Below are positions 1 to 55,430 of a DNA stretch of 64,000 nt, piece after piece. The translations under genes were made by a program, and so were the position numbers. This DNA comes from Oikopleura dioica (lineage: Eukaryota; Animalia; Chordata): positions 11,408,001 to 11,472,000 of the forward strand of contig OU015566.1 in NCBI GenBank assembly GCA_907165135.1. The letters run 5' to 3'. The notes beneath the pieces were generated by a model. It was given only the letters and a program-made list of their open reading frames with translations. It did no database searches and was not told where the DNA came from. The stretch's first letter is position 1. The number at the start of each line of letters is the position of its first letter.

Positions 1-934
1 AATCAAAAAGAGATAGATCGGTAGGGGTGTAGGTGGAGGTGCACAGATCGGCGATATTCGACACCAGACTCAGCAGCATCAGGACTGCTCCCCACTAGCA
101 GCACCCCTGCCTCTCGCACCCTCCGCCCACCTAAAAACCTTCGACGCTACAACTCATCAATCCTAATCATCAAAAGCTTAATAAGTCAACCAAAGCGCTA
201 ATAATCAAACACATCACTAGAAAAAAATATTTACAGAGAAGAAATTAAAGAAACTGTATTTGGAAGTTCAACTTAACAATTTCAAGTAGGTATAATTTCA
301 TATGAATTATTCAATTTACACATAATAAAAGGGGTTCTTAAAAATTCAAAAGGAAAGTTAAAATGGTTTTCTATAGTTGACTTTATTTTATCAGAACAAT
401 AATGCTCTATTCATTGAATAAAAAAAACAAGAAAATCATCATTTCCTACTCCAATTTTTGATAAATTTTCTTCATAAAAACGCATTTGTTTTCGTTCTCC
501 CAATTAGAAGCTCTGCGCGTTCACTTTATCAGCAGTTTAAATCACCACGGGGAAAGTCCCTGCACAAGGGGCCCAATTGAAACGTGTTCATGCAAAAAGG
601 TTTACGTTGACCAGCCCACTTGACTTTTACGAACCCCAGTAATCAAAAAACACGTAACAAGATCAGAAAATTAATAAATGATTTAGGAAGAGCGAGTCTT
701 GCAAGCTGAAAGAATAAAAAAAAACGCGGCGGGAGATGACAACGTGATAATGCGTCAGTTGTAGTGGTCACACTTGTGATCAACTCAAGTCCCAAAGTCC
801 AAAATTACATTCCAAAGGACTCAGAGGACTCATTATGAGGAACGGGCCTTGAACAGAAAAAGGTTGAATCAGAGAGAATAAAAAATTGTTAAAAAAGAGA
901 GTTTGAGGACCCAAGAAATAGTCCAAAAGCCGAC

Positions 935-44418: not shown

Positions 44419-45192
44419 GGGTTTATTCTATCGAACAAACTAATCGATTTAAAAAATTCTGACGATAATGATAAAGCAAAACTAATGGTTTTTAGCTTCT
44501 AATATTTTTCATTGCACATTCTTTAGTTGACGTGAATCTCGAAAATTCCCGTGAACCCAAGTCGAGAAAAAATGCATGTTTTGGAGGTTAATTTTTGGGC
44601 TGGCGAATTTGAAGAATGTAGACATTTTTCACTAGAGCTCGATAAACAATTTAGTCGGAGAAAATTTTCCATCTTTATCTGACTGTACTGTACCTGTAAG
44701 GGTAGTCTGTTGATTCAAATTTATCCACGACCATTTTTATTATTATCTTCTCTCAGAAAGTTATATAGAATTTTTTTCTGAAATCGTGGCTATCGTTGAG
44801 CTACAGTCACCATAGCAACGGGATAACCATAGCTTCAAATATTTGAATTTACAAAGAAAGTGATACTACTAAATTACTTTCCATCGATTGTTTATCTGCT
44901 GATTATAGTTGGGAGGAAACGTGATTGTTGAAATGACCGGAAACTTGTTGAAATTGGCTGATAAACAAATGAGCTCCCGAGTTTATAAACATAAACTGGC
45001 CTTAGAAACACATAAGCGCAATTTTTCGCGAGTTGGACATAATTTGATTTTAATCCTGCATTTTACGCATTCCAATGGAAACTTTTCTCGTTCAAGATTC
45101 AAATTTTCCAAAACTGAAAAAATATTTATCAAATCAGTAAATTTATTGCACGAACCACCGGGTCTGAGGCTTCATTTCATCAAATTTCACAA

Positions 45193-48100
45193 ATGGAGTA
45201 ATTTCATACATGGAGGTGGCCACTAGAACAACCGTGTAATCACTAAAAAAGTGCTGTTTTTAAAGGAAAATGCTTCATCTTAAAATTCATAAAAATTGAA
45301 ATTTGGGGGTGCTGCTCCCGATTGGATCTTCTATTATCGAGCCTCTTATCTACTGCAGCAGATGTCCTAAAATCATTTTTTCAGAAAACTGCTTCTTTTA
45401 ACACTGAGTACAGGAATATGCACTCAGGGTGAAGCAGCCAAGGGCAAGTTCCGCTACAACATCCGGAAAGAAGCGTACCTGGATAAAAACTCCAAAAAGC
45501 AAAAAACCCTTGAAGCTCGTCTTCCAACCCTCCCACCGCCAACAGAAGCGACAAACGAAGACGATTACGACGAAGGAGAAAATCTTATTGGTCTTCGAGC
45601 TGGGCCAGCACTCAACTTTGATTTTTCAAACTTTGCCAAAAAGAGCCGCGGCGGAAACTCGTGTAAGCCCCTGACCGAGTTTTTGAACGACAACGAAGCC
45701 TACTCGTCTCTGTCGAAATACGGCATCGTCACCAGTTGCAGCAGACAACAGTACAAAAACTCCAACTGCTTTTTGAAGTGCCAAAAGGGTTTCGAGCTCG
45801 AACTTGGCTTGGCGAAAAAACCGGTGACGACCTGTCGATGCAGAAAACGACGCGCGTCTGGTGACCCGTGCAACTGGGATGGATTGAAAGAGCTTTCTTG
45901 CAAACGTGAGTTTTTCAGCTTTTCAAAGCTTCTTGAATATTTTCCTTATCGAAAGAGGAACAGTACGTACTGTATCCTTATGAACTTGAGATTCTGAAGG
46001 ACCCGTTTTTGCCCGAAAACGTTGTTGACACTCTTTATCAAATCTAAAAATAGTATTTTTCGGAACTCAAGGAAATACTTATTCTTACTTATCTTAAGCG
46101 GTCATCGAAACACGGTCCTCATGCAGACCTCCCGCTGTCACTGGAACCATGAATATTCTAGGTAAGCTGCCCCTTTTAATAAATGCAGAAATTATACAAA
46201 AGATGAACTCGGACCACCCATCTTCTCGGACGATTATTTGCGGTAATTCTAGGATCAACTTAAAATTTGGCCCATCAATTTGGAGCTTTAATTTGAGTGT
46301 ACTCATTTCCCTAAATACGTCGTTCTCCGAGTTCAAGTTGATGAATTTGAAGCTCCTTATTTTCTGAATGATTTTTTCCGGTTTTCAAAGTCGAAAATTC
46401 ACTGCTCAATAAAAATTCTAGACCGCTGGCAAGACGGGATTATGACTTTCATCGATATCGCCACAAAAGAAAAGCAAAACCTTACCGACTGGACACTCTT
46501 GATCGAATGGAACAAGCCCGTAAAGTCGAAACGAACGTTTCTCTGGAATGCAAACGTTGAAAAAATCTCCAAGGACTTGACCCTTTGGACCGTCGCCAAT
46601 AAAAAAGGAGCGCCGCCCTCGATTAACGGAGTGAAATTTGGAATGGTCGTTGATAATTTGGAGAAACGGGACTACGGAACTGACGAATTGAAGGCAAACA
46701 TCTTCCTTTGGAACTTTTACAACGAAGAGGCTGCCTGTTGGTCGCTCTCAGAAGACAGTATTTTAGCACGATCAGCAGTGAAAGAGCAATCGACTGTGTC
46801 TGAATTGGAACCGGTTTCTGGGGAAAGAACTTGCTTCATGGGAAAATATGTCAACACAAATATCTGGAAACATCATCATAGGTAACTTTCAAATCATTAT
46901 TCTCCAATATCAAATCATTCGTGATTCAATTTATTAAGTCAATATCGAGTGCACGCTTCATTAGAATTCGATCTTACAGACCCTCTTGGAGAATGGGAAG
47001 TGGAACTGGTCTTTGCGGAGGGAAAGAAGATGCTTGTATTAGAAACACCCCAGCTGACCAAAAAAGACAAGTCGACTGACGGGCGTTACTGGAGTTTTAA
47101 AGCAAGAGCTTTCAACGATGTCCTAGTTTCCAGGAATTTAAAGTTTTTCATGTCTGGCGCGATGTGGCGGTCTGCTCCTGCTCCCAATGCAGGTTTGAAT
47201 AAAAACAGTTGATAACCGCGGAAATCTTCGCCTGAAACGCAGCTTATACTTAACTTTGTCCGAAATCCGGAAAACGTTTGATTTTTTTACTCTGAAAATT
47301 GAACGGAAACGCACCGTGTCCGGAAATAAATCTACAGACAGGGGCATTTACTGTATAAGCCACATCATTTTTGAAATAATCTTATATGGTATTTTAATGC
47401 CATCTTGTCTGTAGAACAAACCGACGCAGTTTTGCGAAAACCGATATCTGACTTAAATAAATAGGTGTGGACGAATATGAACCAGATTTGGTATCGGATC
47501 CTTCAGGAGAAGTGCGCATTTGTGGAGTTAAAGCTCCATGGGCGCATATTCAGCAGCGAAGCCAAATCTTCAGGAATTTGTTGAAACTATGTTTACATTT
47601 CTAGCTTACAAATAAGCACCCTATTTCCTTAGATAGGCATCAAGATTGGGGCTCAACTCGTTAGATTCCAGAATCAGCGTAAGGCTAATTGATTTTTAGA
47701 GCATTTCTTACCGCAATTTTGAAAATATTAATAGAGTTGTTAAATAAAATCGACCGCGGCAAATAACTAAACGTGTTTGGCTACGTCTAAACAACAAGTC
47801 AACTTTTTTGGAAGCCAGAATTTGACCATCAAAACTCGAAATTTCTATTTGAAAAAAATCAACCCCAACTGTAAATTTGCCTAATTTCGGCTAAATGAAT
47901 AGAAACTTTTAAGAGATCTTCAAAAAATAGAAGCTTTCAAAGCTCTTTTTGTCTAGCTCAACCTTTTAATTCTTCGCTTGCGTTATCACTTATCTACACT
48001 ATCTTTTGATCCAGAAATTGCCCGTTGCTCTGTTAGAAAAACTCACCCATCGAAGTCACTTGTAATTACAGAATGAACTGCATCTACAGTGTATATTTAA

Positions 48101-51100
48101 ACATGTATCTAGATATAGTAATACCTGCCGCGATAAGGTCTTGGTCGTATTTTCCTAAGATGGCTTTTCTATTTGGGTTATAAAATCCTTATCAGTGGAG
48201 TTACACGTTGCCCGATCTCATCTATCCTCACTTTTAATTATTGCCTCTCGCGAACTTTGGCCGAGGAAATTTTTCTTACCGAAGAAACACTTTAAATACA
48301 CCTGCCAAAGATGTCATTGGGGGCTGCCGCACCCTCACAAGTGCTTCTAGTCGAGTTCTGAACGTGTTACAAGGTAGTAAGAAAAGCTTCACCGACTGTG
48401 GTGAGCATCCTTGATCAATTAAAGTATTCGCTCACGCCCTGAACACGTTTGGCTTGATGAATTTTATACTTGAAGGCTTCAAGTTGTAATTGCCTTAGTC
48501 AAGTTTTTTTTGCTCACATAAGATTTTATCGCTTGATTTTCCCTTGAATTCTAGTTGATAATTACAGGGATTTTCTATTGTAAAGCTCAAGATTTAGTAA
48601 ATTATAGACTAGAGTTTATTGTAAGCCGGATAAATAGGCTATGAACCCCTTTTTATACGAAGTAAGAAAGTGAAAGGTAGCACGAAAAAATGAGCGGTTG
48701 TGGTTTTGTTCGGACGACGGGATTACCTCAAAAAGGCTTCTGAGGTTCTATCTTGGAATTTTTGTTTATATATAAAATGGTTTATGCATGTCAGGGGCAA
48801 CTATTTTCAACCAATGATAAAGTGCTCCGATTTACGAAGGAAAATGCGAAAAGAACAGTAGTGAGATGGTGGAGAGCTACGATTATTTGGAAGAAGAAAG
48901 GTGCCAGAACTGGTCGCCAGATTCAATTTTCAAGCAAGATAAAGGTCAGTAGAAGCCCTTGCGTTCTGTCTTTAAGGGTGTCCCCAACGATCGAGGCCGA
49001 GACTGTCTAACTCGGTGACTTAAATTTTTCTTCTTATTTAGGAAATTCTGATTCCGATCCTTTTTTCAGATCTTCAATATCTTATCTACTTCTCGAGATA
49101 TGGCTTTTTCTATGAGCGCGCTAATGCATTAGCCTTCGATAGAAATGCACTGTGAAAATGGCAATTTTGAAATTCTCAATTAAGTGTAGCAAATTATATA
49201 TCTCCTGAAAGCTTGAAAAATAATAATATTCAAATAGATTTTTCATGTAGAAACTATCCGATTAGTAGAATTATTAACTCAAAGTTGATCCTGTTTCAAA
49301 AAAATCGTTGGGGACACCCTTAAAGATGTCTTTAAAGATGTCTTTTTAGATCTGCTACGGCTCTGGAATAAGGGCAAAATGTGCGATCACCAAACTGACA
49401 CCACCAGTAGATATATTTGCTACTCAATTCTTTACATGGAATCTCAAAAAGGTACTTGATCTAAAACTGCTCCCCTTTGCTCAACTAAGAATTTCTAGCT
49501 GGAAAAGAGCTCAACATGGTTCCGTGGAGAGGCCAATCCACGTTGAAAGATGGCTGTGATTTGGTCGATTCGAAGTTTAAAGCGCCGATTCCGGTTGATC
49601 TCAGTGGAGGATTCTTTGCAGATGATGGTCACGTGAAAGTGACACAGGTAAATATTCATGTTGTGAACTCTTTAGCTACGATGGTGTCTAACAACTGGAG
49701 AAGATTGGAAGAACTTGGAGTGCTAAGGGAAGTCGTAGGATACATCAAACACGCGGCGGAATTCCTCGATCAGGCGCGGTTCGCCGGTGCCAATATGGTC
49801 GTACAGGTCAGTTCAAATGCATAAGGGAAACGTGCAGTTGTCAAAATTCAGGTCCTCAGTCGGATGCGGATAAAACCCCAAAACTAGATATTTTTTCGTT
49901 TTTTTTCGGTTAACCTGCACAGATTGAGAACGCGTGGGAATATTTTTTGTTACATTTATTGATTCAAAGAACTGAATACTTTATAAGAGACTGTTTTGCA
50001 CAAATATTTGGCCAGTTTCGATCCAAGAACTGGCTTTTTAGGTGAAATAACGACACTTATTTTGAAAGTAACAATGAATAGCTGTAAGTAGAATGAAAGC
50101 TGGCAGAATTTTGACAAAATCGCTAATAAAACATAAAAACACAGTTTACGAGAAAGAAGAGATATTCTGAGCCCCAGCCAGACGCTTAATTGAAAATGAT
50201 AATAGGTGCGCAAAAAAACTCGATTAACTTACCTACGAGCTCATATTCTTTGGGACCAGATGATATTCTTCAGAAAAACTCCAATTACCATCATTAAGCC
50301 AAACAAGAGGACTCTCTTATCGCAGTCGTTCATGCTGAAAAATTTTGAATAGAAATAGATAATCTACTGAATAATTCAGTTACCGAAGATAGATCCTATA
50401 CAAAATTTTCACTGTCGAACGGAAATTCATCTGAGGAATGCGGTCGAAAAATTGATCTACTTCGTCTTCTAGATTTTCGTTTCGTTCCCTCATGGTTAAA
50501 AAGAGTTACCCACATTCACTATCTGAAATATGAAATTTGTTATTTTTTTTCCACACTTGAAAATATAATCTATCTCTTTTTAATAATTCTGCATTTTTAT
50601 TGCTCTTTATTCTCTTTGCCTTCTAGCAGTGAAATAAGTCTGCGAAATTTAGGCACAGTCGCCCTGCTCTTTTCGCCAAAGCAAAAAACTTCTAATTGGC
50701 TAATAATGCCCTCTGGCGCCACTCTTATGTGTTTGTATGGACCATACAGTGTGAGTCATACATTATGTCCCCATGCAGCATTTGAACTAGCTATTTATAT
50801 TAGATATAATATGGGTCTTCAATGGTGCCTTATTTTATGTGAGGTTGTCAGACTAAAATGCTTAAAGATAAATATCGAAACTTCACTCATAAAAATTCGT
50901 TGTTTGGAATAAAAATTCTTTCAGGTTGGAGACGCACGTGTAGACGATCGCTGCTCGGAAGGATCAATCGAAGCTTCCGCGGAGAGGCGAGTGACTTTGG
51001 CTTCAGACCGAAAGTATCCAGCCACAGACGCACTCGCCGGAACCGCGGGTGCCCTTTTAGCAGCCGCCAACGCCCTGGATACTGTCGACGAGAGCGATTT

Positions 51101-52043
51101 TGCTGACCGTTTAAGGAGCGGATTCGAAATTTGAACAGCATATTTATATTCAACATCGCGTTAATTTCTATAATATCTAGCGATGTTCATGATATAATCC
51201 GTTAACAGACGCAAGTCCGAAAACATCATTTCATCAATGCTCAAAAGTCCTCAAGGTTTGTCAGGAGAAAATGCCAATTTCGGAGAAGGACAACTTTCGC
51301 ATCTGTGGAGATCAACTTGCTTTTATGATGAACTTGCGTTTTCTGCTGCGTGGAGCTGTACTCGAGAAAATCAAAATGCGAAAGCGGTATAAAAACGAGC
51401 AAAATGGCAAATTAAATAACTACTTTTAGATTTGCTTCGAGCAAGTAGAAAAACTCCTGGAAGAAGCAGATGAAAAATGCCAAGGCAACCAAGAAGAAAC
51501 GAGCATTTCAAGCTGGGATGACCTTAGACTGACGGCAAAATACGTTCTCGCACGTTATTCAGGAAGCCTAACACACGTCAAGGTAACTGTCAAGCCACGG
51601 GTTTCTACTGACTAAAAGCGGAAACAATCGGATTTACAAAGAAATCCGGCCTGCGATCAATTATTATGAAATTTCCTAATTTTTAGACCTTTGTTGAAAA
51701 CCTGAATCAAATTGCAAACAATGCTCGACCATGTACAGGAGATTCTGTCGAAAGAACCTCTGCTCAAGCTGCTACTCTTGCTCTTGGACTGTCTCTGGAT
51801 GAGTTCCCGCGTGCGAATGAGTTAACTTACTCGCCCGTTGGTTTCTGGAGACGAAGCCTGATCAAGATGCTCAGCTGCGTGTCGAAGAATATGATCGGGT
51901 TCGGAGCAGATGATGGTGCAGCAATTTTCCACAAAAACTCATTGGCCAATGGAGCTACTTTATGGGGAGCAATCGTAAATGAATCTGGACGAACTAAGAC
52001 GACGATGAACATCGACTTCCTCCTTGCTGCCGCCAGTCTTTAA
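45193..52043 (+). CDS. Secreted modular protein: signal peptide, Sushi/CCP-like module, two CBM2-like modules, catalytically degenerate GH9 domain
   Basis: KLLLLTLSTGICTQG leader; 8-Cys CFLKCQKGF...CRC...CNW module; CSIKILDRWQDG...WTLLIEW...LWNANV. GH9-collinear exons: SILYMESQK|AGK, VPWRGQSTLKDG, DLSGGFFADDGHVK, VQ|VGD, PATDALAGTAGALLAA, FYDELAFSAAW, SWDD, MIGFG, LWGAIV. The start and the linker exons at 47.4-48.8 kb are uncertain. Confidence 0.72.
48976..49319. mobile_element. 344-bp MITE, TTAA TSD, 16-bp TIR (Kolobok-like)
   Basis: TTAA|GGGTGTCCCCAACGAT...ATCGTTGGGGACACCC|TTAA. Confidence 0.9.
50241..50493 (-). CDS. Candidate nested antisense gene encoding a 67-aa single-pass membrane microprotein
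   Basis: MRERNENLEDEVDQFFDRIPQMNFRSTVKILYRIYLR|MNDCDKRVLLFGLMMVIGVFLKNIIWSQRI*, with an in-phase 49-nt GT-AG intron. Lies inside the 49807-50924 intron of the GH9-like gene. Confidence 0.45.
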
Positions 52044-52597: not shown

Positions 52598-53731
52598 ATG
52601 TCGCTGAAAGGAAGAGTTGCTCTTGTTACAGGAGCAAGTAGAGGAATCGGCCGCGGCTGTGCTAAGGCTCTTGCAGATGAAGGAGCTACTGTCTATATAA
52701 CAGGTCGGAAAATAGAAACTTTGTCTCAAACAGCGAGAGAGATCGGCGGAGAAGTTGTTCCAGTTGCTTGTGATCACTCTGACGATAATCAAGGTAAAGT
52801 GATGGAGTTTTCTTATCTAACAGAAATAAGTCGAGAAATTATTCAAAAGGATCGACGCAGAGAATTCTGGCCGTCTCGATTTATTGGTGAACAACTGTTA
52901 TTCTGGTGTTCCGACTCTATTTGGAATGGAAGGAGAGTCATCCACACCGGTGAATAAGTTCTGGGAGCAGACGCCAAAGATTTGGGATGCAATCAATAAT
53001 GTAGGGCTGAGAGCGAATTATATTGCTTCTGTTTATGCTGCTCGATTGATGGTACCGAGGTACCTTACTTTCTAAAGACATAAAATTTCATCTAAGAATG
53101 AAGAGGAGAGGGCTTAATCGTCAACATGAGCTCTCCAGGTGGACTTAGTTATACATTCAATGTTGCCTACAGTGTCGGAAAAGCAGCTCAAGATCGAATG
53201 GCTCAAGATTTCAACGTCGAACTCAAAGGAACTGGAGTCAAAGCTCTTTCTCTTTGGCCAAGAGCGACTGAAACCGAATTTATGAGAACCAACGTCGTGG
53301 AAACAGGGTTAGTTTATGAAACTAGCTGTTATTCTTGATAAAACAACTTAGCATGACCGAAAAGGCCGTCGACGTTTGGCTTCGAAATCCGTGCTCGAAG
53401 ACTGATTGGCAAAGCATTCAGTGGGTGGGGAAAACTGTAGCTGCTCTTCTGAGCGATCCGAATCTCGATCAGAAAGCTGGTCGGACAATTTGGTGTGATG
53501 ATGTAAGTCGTTTGTCTATCGCTGTTTTGCTAAGAACCCTAGATTGCGAACGAATTCGACATCCGGGAACTCGATGGAAGCAAGGTGACCCACATTCGCT
53601 CTATGAGACACAACATTGTCGCATACAATGAGGGGCGATTTCCTTGGTACTTGGCCCTGATTCCTGAAGGGCTTTTCATTCCTCAATGGCTTTTTAACTT
53701 TGGTCTTTGGGTCAAAGGAAATAAATTCTAA
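52598..53731 (+). CDS. DHRS1: Dehydrogenase/reductase SDR family member 1
   Basis: VALVTGASRGIG, ATVYITGR, CDHSDD, LVNN, NNVGLRANY, GLIVNMSSPGGLSYTFNVAYSVGKAAQDRMA, SLWP; ends GNKF*. Confidence 0.92.
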
Positions 53732-54299: not shown

Positions 54300-55430
54300 T
54301 TAGTTTGATCCACAGCATGGTTTCTTTTGATTCGATGACTCGCCGAGATTAACATTGTTAGCTGCTCCGGACTGTGTTTCTTTCTTTGGGAGTTTTTTAG
54401 CTGAAAATATTCGTCAGTTACAGTCTTACAGTCATAAAGCTGGGCTTACCTATTTGTAAAAAGAGGTCATTGACATTAAGCGCAGTCTTGGCCGACGTTT
54501 CCATGAATAAAAGATTATTTTCTTTGGCATAAACTTCTGCATCCTAAATTAACGGTCAGGAAAGAAAGGGGGTAAGAAAAGAGGGTTCAAATAAATGAGG
54601 TTATGTAAAAAAAACGATGCGTGGAAGGATCACTTTACGGAAAATACTCTGTGTAATCGTGTAAAGCGATTTAATGGAATTATTGACTTGATAAGATCTA
54701 AATCCATTTTCAAAATCCGAAAAAATGAAACCCAAAACGCGTAAGAACGCTAAATCAACTACTTGAGGGTCGAGCCCGCTTGCTGGAGATTTACCTCTGT
54801 TTCGACCTCTCTCTTTGCGGCGAGATCAGCTTTGTTGCCAGCGAGTGCGATCACAATATCTTGATTTGCTTGTTGACGAAGTTCCTTTACCCAGGCCTGT
54901 GCGCGGCTGAATGTGTCTGGACATTGAATATCGTAAACTACCACCGCTGCTTGTGCTCCTCTAGAATTTTGATAGTTAGCAAGAGATAGAAAAAGGTGGA
55001 GACGGCCTAACACTTCGGCAAATGAGGGTGAAAATGAGCTTATCTACGTTTTTGTAAAGAAAATCAAAAGATATTGATTGAACAAACCTGTAATACATTG
55101 GCGCAAGACTGTGATATCGCTCCTGTCCGGCGGTGTCCCAGATTTCGAATTTGACAGTGACATCGTCAAGACAGACCGTCTGTGTTAAAAAGGCAGCTCC
55201 GATTGTTGATTCTTGATGATCCTGTAAAATGAGAATTGAATTAATTCAACCGTCTCTCACTTATTATTCAGCTCGAGCGTTTGTTCTGCTCTTTTGAGCT
55301 GAGATGACATTACCTTGAACTCTCCCTTGACGAATCTGAGGACAAGGGAGGATTTGCCGACGGCGGCTTCGCCCAGAAGCACGAGCTTGAACTGAATGAT
55401 CTTGTTTGTAGCTGGTCGCGGGGCCGCCAT
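54300..55430 (-). CDS. RAB5: Rab5 GTPase (canonical)
   Basis: [72 protein letters not shown]; ends PCCGSN*. Confidence 0.97.

Follow-up and report, generated by a model that had tools for sequence, protein, structure and literature searches.

Within a 64,000-nucleotide (nt) window of the Oikopleura dioica genome (contig OU015566.1, positions 11,408,001 to 11,472,000; positions below are those of the window, that is the whole stretch analysed), the segment 45193-52043 of the + strand carries a single spliced gene which joins a half resembling a type 2 carbohydrate-binding module (CBM2) to a domain of glycoside hydrolase family 9 (GH9). The encoded protein is a pseudoenzyme maintained under strong purifying selection and not a product of decay, and the losses in its catalytic motifs are conserved in at least three other taxa. 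On balance, we think that it is probably a secreted, non-hydrolytic polysaccharide-binding protein, with cellulose as its most likely ligand.

The gene model was built from a reading of the DNA together with joints in RNA reads, following a listing of open reading frames (ORFs) and frame scans in which the + strand between 45.2 and 52.0 kb presented short open segments. It comprises 13 exons (Table 1) with a total length of 2823 nt and 940 codons, and a frame check finds 0 internal stops; ten of the introns are of the GT..AG type and two are of the GA..AG type. The spliced model of 940 amino acids (aa) was used for this frame check, for local tblastn against the loci of relatives and for the ratio of nonsynonymous to synonymous substitution rates (dN/dS), while the database and fold work was carried out with single exons or with proteins and loci returned by the tools.

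The splicing was followed over positions 45850-51849 with three oligo-dT bulk runs and one single-cell run. These runs, although filed under the same species label, come from a sister lineage which is 88-95% alike to the window, so their coverage is patchy. The CBM half is connected to the GH9 half by three reads at the joint 47571/3 > 48821/3, equivalent to 47573>48823. Upstream of it, the exon 2 donor (45905/45906) presents 17 loose ends and three joints, the loose ends matching the sequence from 46099 onwards (45905>46099), and the joint 46161>46422 is supported by three reads, each also carrying exon 2. Reads there apparently resume at 46415, an offset explained by the letters ATTCTAG, which both end exon 3 and precede exon 4, and the true joint is 46161>46422. 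Within the GH9 half, reads leaving 48944 resume at 49364 after 14 divergent letters, a length equal to that of 49350-49363 (48944>49350); the GT..AG joint 49806>50925 is crossed by more than 20 reads and 51115>51209 by 11, and at 51582 there are 83 loose ends, whose translation, NFVENLN, matches the sequence from 51687 onwards (51582>51687). Both GA..AG introns, 47574-48822 and 51116-51208, have split-read support, and in both a 2-nt ambiguity of the joint resolves to GA..AG.

Homologous proteins and contigs preserve the same order of parts. A metatranscriptome protein of the sister lineage, P0011, joins exons 2, 3 and 4 (...LSCK, PVIETRSSCRPPAASGTMNIL, DRWEDG...). A protein of 504 aa with 45% identity to the window model (P0008) is encoded on the Logan contig L009, which holds, in the order of the window, the end of CBM module 1, the linker, the whole of module 2, the two-Cys linker, a complete GH9-like domain and a stop. 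The exon order is also kept in genomic contigs of the sister lineage, with exons 2-6 on L010-L012 and exons 7-13 on L006-L008. A preliminary description of this DNA had placed the CBM and GH9 parts in a single gene and had linked them across 47.2-48.8 kb on phase compatibility. The single gene is borne out by the open 13-exon frame, the RNA joints, P0011 and the collinear ORF of L009. The bridge itself is real, being crossed by the joint 47573>48823 and by the collinear L009/P0008, but the gap was incompletely described, as it holds an extra exon (47465-47573) and a GA-AG intron.

Sequence comparisons make the GH9 assignment solid, as the preliminary description had proposed. The exon 9 segment (49489-49821) matches Pfam Glyco_hydro_9 (PF00759) at E 3e-8 with 33.8 bits against a cut-off of 27.7, the exon 10 segment (50913-51131) matches it at E 2.8e-4, and the orthologue P0008 reaches 102 bits (E 6.2e-29) over HMM positions 4-304 of 444 only. 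P0004 and P0008 retrieve solved GH9 endoglucanases from the PDB at E 2e-16 to 1e-13; exon 9 alone finds no GH9 there by phmmer, so that the longer orthologues were needed. An AlphaFold2 (AF2) model of P0008:85-504, for which the exon 13 rows misplaced by MAFFT in the GH9 alignment were dropped, is poor (predicted local distance difference test, pLDDT, 53.4) and all-helical. This poor model aligns to whole GH9 chains (1ks8 7..433, Z 14.0, root-mean-square deviation 5.0) no better than to epimerases or GH76, which are also (alpha/alpha)6 folds. The GH9 scaffold and some of the cleft Trp appear to be kept, the Trp of ..W.., DE..W..W and SW[DN]D being retained.

The catalytic centre is altered at several places. 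Following the Thermobifida fusca Cel9A literature, we take the Asp pair of DAGD to be the base and the C-terminal Glu to be the acid, with His and Tyr in supporting roles; the residues named in the DH.WWG motif are presumably its His and Trp, and the FY pair presumably holds the critical Tyr. In the alignment, GGFFADDGHVK of the window and GG[FY]FIDDGHVK of its relatives lie under GGWYDAGDHVK of 3WC3, 8IHW and 2XFG. Both Asp of DAGD are replaced in the window, by A586 and G589, and D587 and D588 stand one position off. The form ADDGHVKVTQV is shared by the window and the sister lineage, and IDDGHVKVTQV by P0002, P0003 and P0008. The residues DERCEN (DDRCSE in the window) sit under DHAWWG, and the FY pair before the conserved Trp is matched by IA in P0008 and, in our reading across the tblastn and PDB alignments, by SH in the window.

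At the C-terminus, the Pfam match of P0008 ends at HMM position 304 of 444, so that 96 residues remain to fill 140 positions, and the last 100-120 aa are both unalignable to GH9 and shorter than in GH9. A profile of the last ~120 residues, built from four sequences, has no PDB match at E<=10, the ..Y..NE.. acid motif is absent from the last 120 aa of the window protein, P0006, P0007 and P0008, and none of the acidic residues after LWG is invariant. From GFG to the end there are 48 residues here; the canonical GH9-17 of O. dioica, which reads GYG...HHR...DYTRNEPS... (10.64898/2026.03.31.715263 SI2), has ~50 from GYG to the Glu alone. The same short ending is found in the exon 13 orthologues P0006 (92%), P0007 (84%) and P0008 (~38%, diverged). 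Deletion of the loop which carries the acid, as described earlier, appears to be the best reading of this unalignable, short ending. Both earlier statements on the catalytic centre therefore hold: the base motif is gone, with ADDG in place of DAGD, and the C-terminal acid region is either missing or beyond recognition.

The gene is under strong purifying selection. Among the 40 best-supported differences between the reads and the window, 31 fall on the third base of a codon and 29 leave the amino acid unchanged. The dN/dS between the window and the sister-lineage contigs (Nei-Gojobori, 911 codons) is 0.083 overall, with dS saturated. By part, it is 0.066 in the 8-Cys module, 0.016 in CBM module 1, 0.075 in the module 2 region, 0.205 in the two-Cys linker, 0.089 in the N-terminal two thirds of GH9 and 0.070 in the C-terminal exon. 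A decaying pseudogene is excluded, since dN/dS is low in every part and the differences are mostly synonymous. Thus, from the earlier proposal of a non-hydrolytic pseudoenzyme, the maintenance of a protein with lost catalytic motifs (dN/dS ~0.08) is confirmed, and its non-hydrolytic character is weighed below.

The N-terminal half contains three modules. CBM module 1 (aa 184-302) lies between Cys184 and Cys302. The exon 4 segment (46292-46882) matches Pfam CBM_2 (PF00553) at E 3e-4 with 21.5 bits, under the cut-off of 24, and orthologues of the module score 18.1 and 15.8 bits, again sub-threshold. We modelled the intron-less L014 orthologue of the module with AF2 (pLDDT 68.5, predicted template modelling score, pTM, 0.69). 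The top Foldseek matches of this model are the CBM2 structures 2rtt, 3ndy_E, 1e5b, 6qfs, 1exg and 6f7e, none of them at E<=1e-3; for 2rtt, 3ndy_E and 1e5b the probability is 0.84-0.99 and E is 4e-3 to 2e-2. VIA-align places CBM2-type modules of chitinases and cellulases first, with Z of 7.3-5.3, a middling zone, and a module 1 profile run against PDB sequences ranks 3ndy_E first, the viral replicase polyprotein 7nh7 second and 2rtt third, none being significant. The residues W199, W220, W226 and W238 align to the W, GW(TL), KW and MW(SA) positions of 3ndy_E, while the third surface Trp of the planar face appears to be replaced. The evidence for a CBM2-like module 1 is concordant but weak.

Module 2 (aa 334-454) is likewise Cys-bounded and Trp-rich. 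It has no Pfam match at E<=10, a PDB profile search returns no CBM for it, hhalign finds no similarity to module 1 (probability 0.07), and its best ESM Atlas match (0.83) is unrelated. A CBM2 label for module 2 is unsupported. The remaining module, with eight Cys at aa 95-174 and W166, has no Pfam match to Sushi/CCP (PF00084) at E<=10. Sushi clusters make up 25 of its 30 feature matches in the ESM Atlas (best score 0.95, 190 shared features), at a recognition of 2231, under the 2300 mark. Language-model features thus suggest a Sushi-like module, as a lead and not as membership. For the preliminary description, these results mean that the first of its two CBM2-like repeats is retained on weak concordant evidence and that the second, negative in Pfam, hhalign, the PDB and the Atlas, is not; its Sushi module has the eight Cys and the Atlas clusters but no Pfam match. 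The HMMER comparison with Pfam which it had put forward as a check places GH9 above the cut-off, but CBM_2 below it and Sushi without a match.

The N-terminus carries a hydrophobic core, KLLLLTLSTGIC, which is conserved and reads KLLLLTVSTGIC in the sister contig L010. The Kyte-Doolittle hydropathy score of aa 4-14 is 2.1, and hydropathy finds no transmembrane segment elsewhere in the 940-aa model. The signal peptide proposed earlier is probable, with its hydrophobic N-terminus conserved in L010 and no accompanying transmembrane segment, and the protein is probably secreted. At L010:207-240, an in-frame ATG directly upstream of the core gives MHLTFLFLRKLLLL. The homologue of this start ATG in the window, at 45362, is followed two codons later by a TAA at 45368, which may be an assembly error or a polymorphism. 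As the homologous ATG is closed by this TAA, the start must come from the putative 5-nt exon at 45193 or from an unseen source. The putative exon lies in a 17-nt tandem duplication (45183-45215; AATTTCACAAATGGAGT, 1.9 copies), where ATGGAG occurs twice, the first copy alone being followed by a GT donor in frame.

Table 1 Exons of the gene at 45193-52043 (+ strand), their content and the support for each.
Exon	Position	Content	Support and remarks
1 (putative)	45193..45197 (+)	ATGGA: start codon, then GTAATT donor	Read from sequence alone, outside RNA read coverage
2	45385..45905 (+)	Probable signal-peptide core KLLLLTLSTGICTQG (to 45430), acidic Pro-rich spacer, 8-Cys Sushi-like module (45662-45901)	Conserved in sister contig L010
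3	46099..46161 (+)	First strand of CBM2-like module 1, including N-terminal Cys184 (46122)	
4	46422..46881 (+)	Remainder of CBM2-like module 1 (to Cys302, 46738), linker, start of module 2 (Cys334, 46832)	
5	46939..47192 (+)	Body of module 2, Cys-bounded, Trp-rich, beta-type	In-phase GT..AG; reads at 46972-47013; collinear in L009, L011, L012
6	47465..47573 (+)	End of module 2 (Cys454, 47523) and conserved WAHIQQRSQIF	GA..AG intron 47574-48822 follows; contiguous with GH9 part in P0008/L009
7	48823..48944 (+)	Two-Cys linker SAPIYEGKCE...ERCQNW	RNA joints on both sides; 58% identity to N-terminal extension of P0004 and L001-L005, there fused to GH9 exon
8	49350..49451 (+)	First helix of GH9 domain, YICYSILYMESQK	Aligns with P0002/P0004
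9	49499..49806 (+)	GH9 core: WRGQSTLKDG, degenerate base motif GGFFADDGHVK (49606-49638)	Pfam PF00759
10	50925..51115 (+)	GH9, VGDARVDDRCSE...	Pfam PF00759, E 2.8e-4; GA..AG intron 51116-51208 follows
11	51209..51386 (+)	GH9, ...WRSTCFYDELAFSAAW	44% identity to P0002; RNA coverage
12	51430..51582 (+)	GH9, ...SWDDLRLTAKYVLA	Aligned to P0002 and P0008
13	51687..52043 (+)	Divergent, shortened C-terminal part of GH9, ends ...GFGADDGAAIFHKNS...LWGAIVNESGRTKTTMNIDFLLAAASL and stop	GAIVNESGRTKTTMNIDF at 51966-52019

Two candidate features of the gene model were rejected. An exon at 46188-46243 is ruled out by the RNA reads and by P0011, which go straight from 46161 to 46422, and an apparent joint 51369>51510/11 is merely divergent exon sequence. 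Two irregularities were seen in the homologous sequences. P0011 is 33 aa short in the 8-Cys module, where five of the eight Cys are missing, and has a different sequence upstream of ASLIGLRSGP, which may reflect an alternative isoform or a chimeric assembly. The otherwise collinear L009 shifts frame at ~410-430, in an A7 run that separates module 2 from its last strand; the Logan contig probably contains a homopolymer error here, a real frameshift being possible. Downstream of the gene, the window contains a short-chain dehydrogenase-like gene at 52598-53631 on the + strand (MSLKGRVALVTGASRGIGRG...) and an exon of a Rab-type GTPase at 54759-55013 on the - strand; no other cellulose-related gene adjoins it among its neighbours in the window.

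A search with exon 9 over 1.84 billion representative proteins returns three fragments only: P0001 (98%, 93 aa), P0002 (54%) and P0003 (49%). Neither an annotated full-length protein with this GH9 exon nor a canonical GH9 was found among these representatives; word-indexed searches reach close kin only. P0002 and P0004 lie on the Tara metagenome and Logan contigs L001-L005, where exons 7-12 of the window correspond to one exon of 376 codons. At L004:720-1847 a 54%-identical relative has a single exon where the window has six (48823-51582), so that the window lineage carries five extra introns of 43 to 1118 nt in this part; in the relative L014, exons 3 and 4 of the window form one ORF. The difference points to introns gained by the O. 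dioica lineage or lost by the relatives. One and the same element (translated ...KRPKTLKNDIFGSQNDHFWSF...) recurs at L004:19-207, at L004:1935-2054 and at the ends of L001 and L003; it is probably a dispersed repeat which breaks the metagenome assemblies on either side of the big GH9 exon.

Taken together, the parts would follow one another as a signal peptide, an acidic spacer, the 8-Cys Sushi-like module, a CBM2-like beta-sandwich, a second Cys-bounded beta module, the two-Cys linker and a GH9-derived (alpha/alpha)6 domain. We favour cellulose as the ligand because the host is a cellulose-making tunicate and because the protein combines a GH9 cleft with a CBM2-like face. Binding would take place through this face and perhaps through the disabled cleft, while the Sushi-like module and module 2 could offer contacts to other proteins. 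The product would then be an extracellular cellulose-binding or cross-linking component and not an enzyme, which could cross-link, cap or shield microfibrils; the house rudiment, the cuticle of the tail or trunk and the gut are candidate sites of action.

Several observations weigh against this interpretation or parts of it. The start codon and the signal peptide would depend, in this lineage, on a putative exon of 5 nt. The links 46881>46939 and 47192>47465 are without an RNA joint and are based on splice sites, phase and the collinearity of orthologues. Module 1 stays below the Pfam cut-off for CBM_2, with middling structural matches (Foldseek E of at least 4e-3, Z of at most 7.3), and several of its best CBM2-type matches bind chitin, which makes chitin a possible ligand. 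The shifted DD pair is conserved and an acidic position near the end is kept (E921, Asp in P0008), so the active site may be unconventional instead of lost. Finally, the terms 'hydrolase' and 'cellulase' do not occur among the 80 oikosins of the house proteome (PMC3390340), where an unannotated gene would be invisible.

The observations on module 1 and on the house proteome are also those which would fit a different non-hydrolytic protein, a chitin- or glycan-binding lectin acting in gut, defence or cuticle with no role in house cellulose. The top structural matches of module 1 include the chitin-binding CBM2-type structures 2rtt, 6bt9, 8ose and 5xsv, chitin synthase is expressed in some oikoplastic cells (10.64898/2026.03.31.715263), and no GH9 or CBM2 protein appears in the house proteome (PMC3390340). 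We nevertheless regard this alternative as doubtful: GH9 clefts and CBM2a modules are classically directed to cellulose, O. dioica itself produces cellulose and its large GH9 family is linked to the house epithelium (10.64898/2026.03.31.715263), and the Trp positions which align to the cellulase CBM2 3ndy_E are conserved. A rewired active site would mean that the protein is still an enzyme, which uses the shifted DD pair and E921 on cellulose or another beta-glycan. The strict conservation of [AI]DDGHVKVTQV across four taxa, the conservative retention of one acidic position near the C-terminus (E921, Asp in P0008) and the strong selection seen in dN/dS are what such an enzyme would present, but four separate elements of the catalytic centre are altered together and the Glu-bearing segment is missing, not substituted. 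To our knowledge, no GH9 works without the Asp pair of DAGD, and we consider residual catalysis quite unlikely.

An artefact, either a decaying pseudogene or a CBM gene and a neighbouring GH9 relic whose phases happen to fit, is highly improbable. It could draw on the closure of the ancestral in-frame ATG (45362) by the TAA at 45368 and on P0011, the sole transcript-derived protein over the N-terminal half, with its missing 33 aa of the 8-Cys module and different 5' end. The open frame of 940 codons, a dN/dS of ~0.08, splicing across the junction and a single ORF in the 45%-identical relative stand against it, and it is already largely refuted.

Among animals, cellulose is made by tunicates alone, and the way in which larvaceans work it into a filter house of such precision has yet to be explained. 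A conserved, secreted relative of the cellulases which does not cut and probably binds would be a candidate for capping or cross-linking microfibrils or for shielding them from the many active GH9 enzymes encoded in this genome, and would be a case of new function in which an enzyme has evolved into a binding protein. More tentatively, larvaceans may keep an ancient, dedicated subfamily of GH9-derived pseudo-cellulases that combine the [AI]DDGHVKVTQV motif and a truncated C-terminus with fused CBM2-like and Sushi-like modules; if so, this would be the first case of a disabled cellulase turned into a structural protein in an animal. The literature search found no paper on GH9 pseudoenzymes or cellulase-like oikosins. 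Neither the public protein sets nor the published list of GH9 genes seems to include the gene, which is perhaps unannotated, since it has no motif in that list, no full-length representative and no entry among the oikosins. The motifs of its N-terminal half are absent from the GH9 sequences given there (SI2), which are listed to ~500 aa. As the gene is apparently missing from protein sets, it may have escaped notice in proteomic and single-cell studies.

The known systems closest to the window protein are the animal GH9 endo-beta-1,4-glucanases (earthworm 3WC3/8IHW, termite 1KS8) and GH9-1 to GH9-17 of O. dioica, which have a homologous PF00759 domain and the landmarks WRG.S.L.DG, QVGD, DEL.W..W and SWDD in common with it. 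Unlike animal GH9, the window protein has ADDG/IDDG for DAGD, is without DH.WWG and FY, and has a short C-terminal third without the NE motif. Expansion of GH9 and CBM2-GH9 layouts are known in this species, where several GH9 paralogues carry N-terminal CBM2-like modules (10.64898/2026.03.31.715263), and GH9-7 has the same N-terminus as the window protein, with a signal peptide and the eight Cys (..TCRC..; 10.64898/2026.03.31.715263, SI2). The CBM2 of bacterial cellulases and chitinases (1EXG, 3NDY_E, 2RTT) is, like module 1, a Cys-bounded module of ~120 aa, whereas module 1 has a score below the cut-off, longer loops and an animal host.

A further parallel is found in the GH18 chi-lectins such as YKL-40, which, like the window protein, are conserved, secreted hydrolase scaffolds without catalytic residues. 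Chi-lectins are thought to bind their former substrate. They differ in being TIM barrels of GH18 with proven ligand binding, while the window protein is an (alpha/alpha)6 GH9 for which binding is proposed. The protein lacks the two catalytic features of GH9, the base motif and the acid segment, and by analogy it would work more like a pseudoenzyme of the chi-lectin type.

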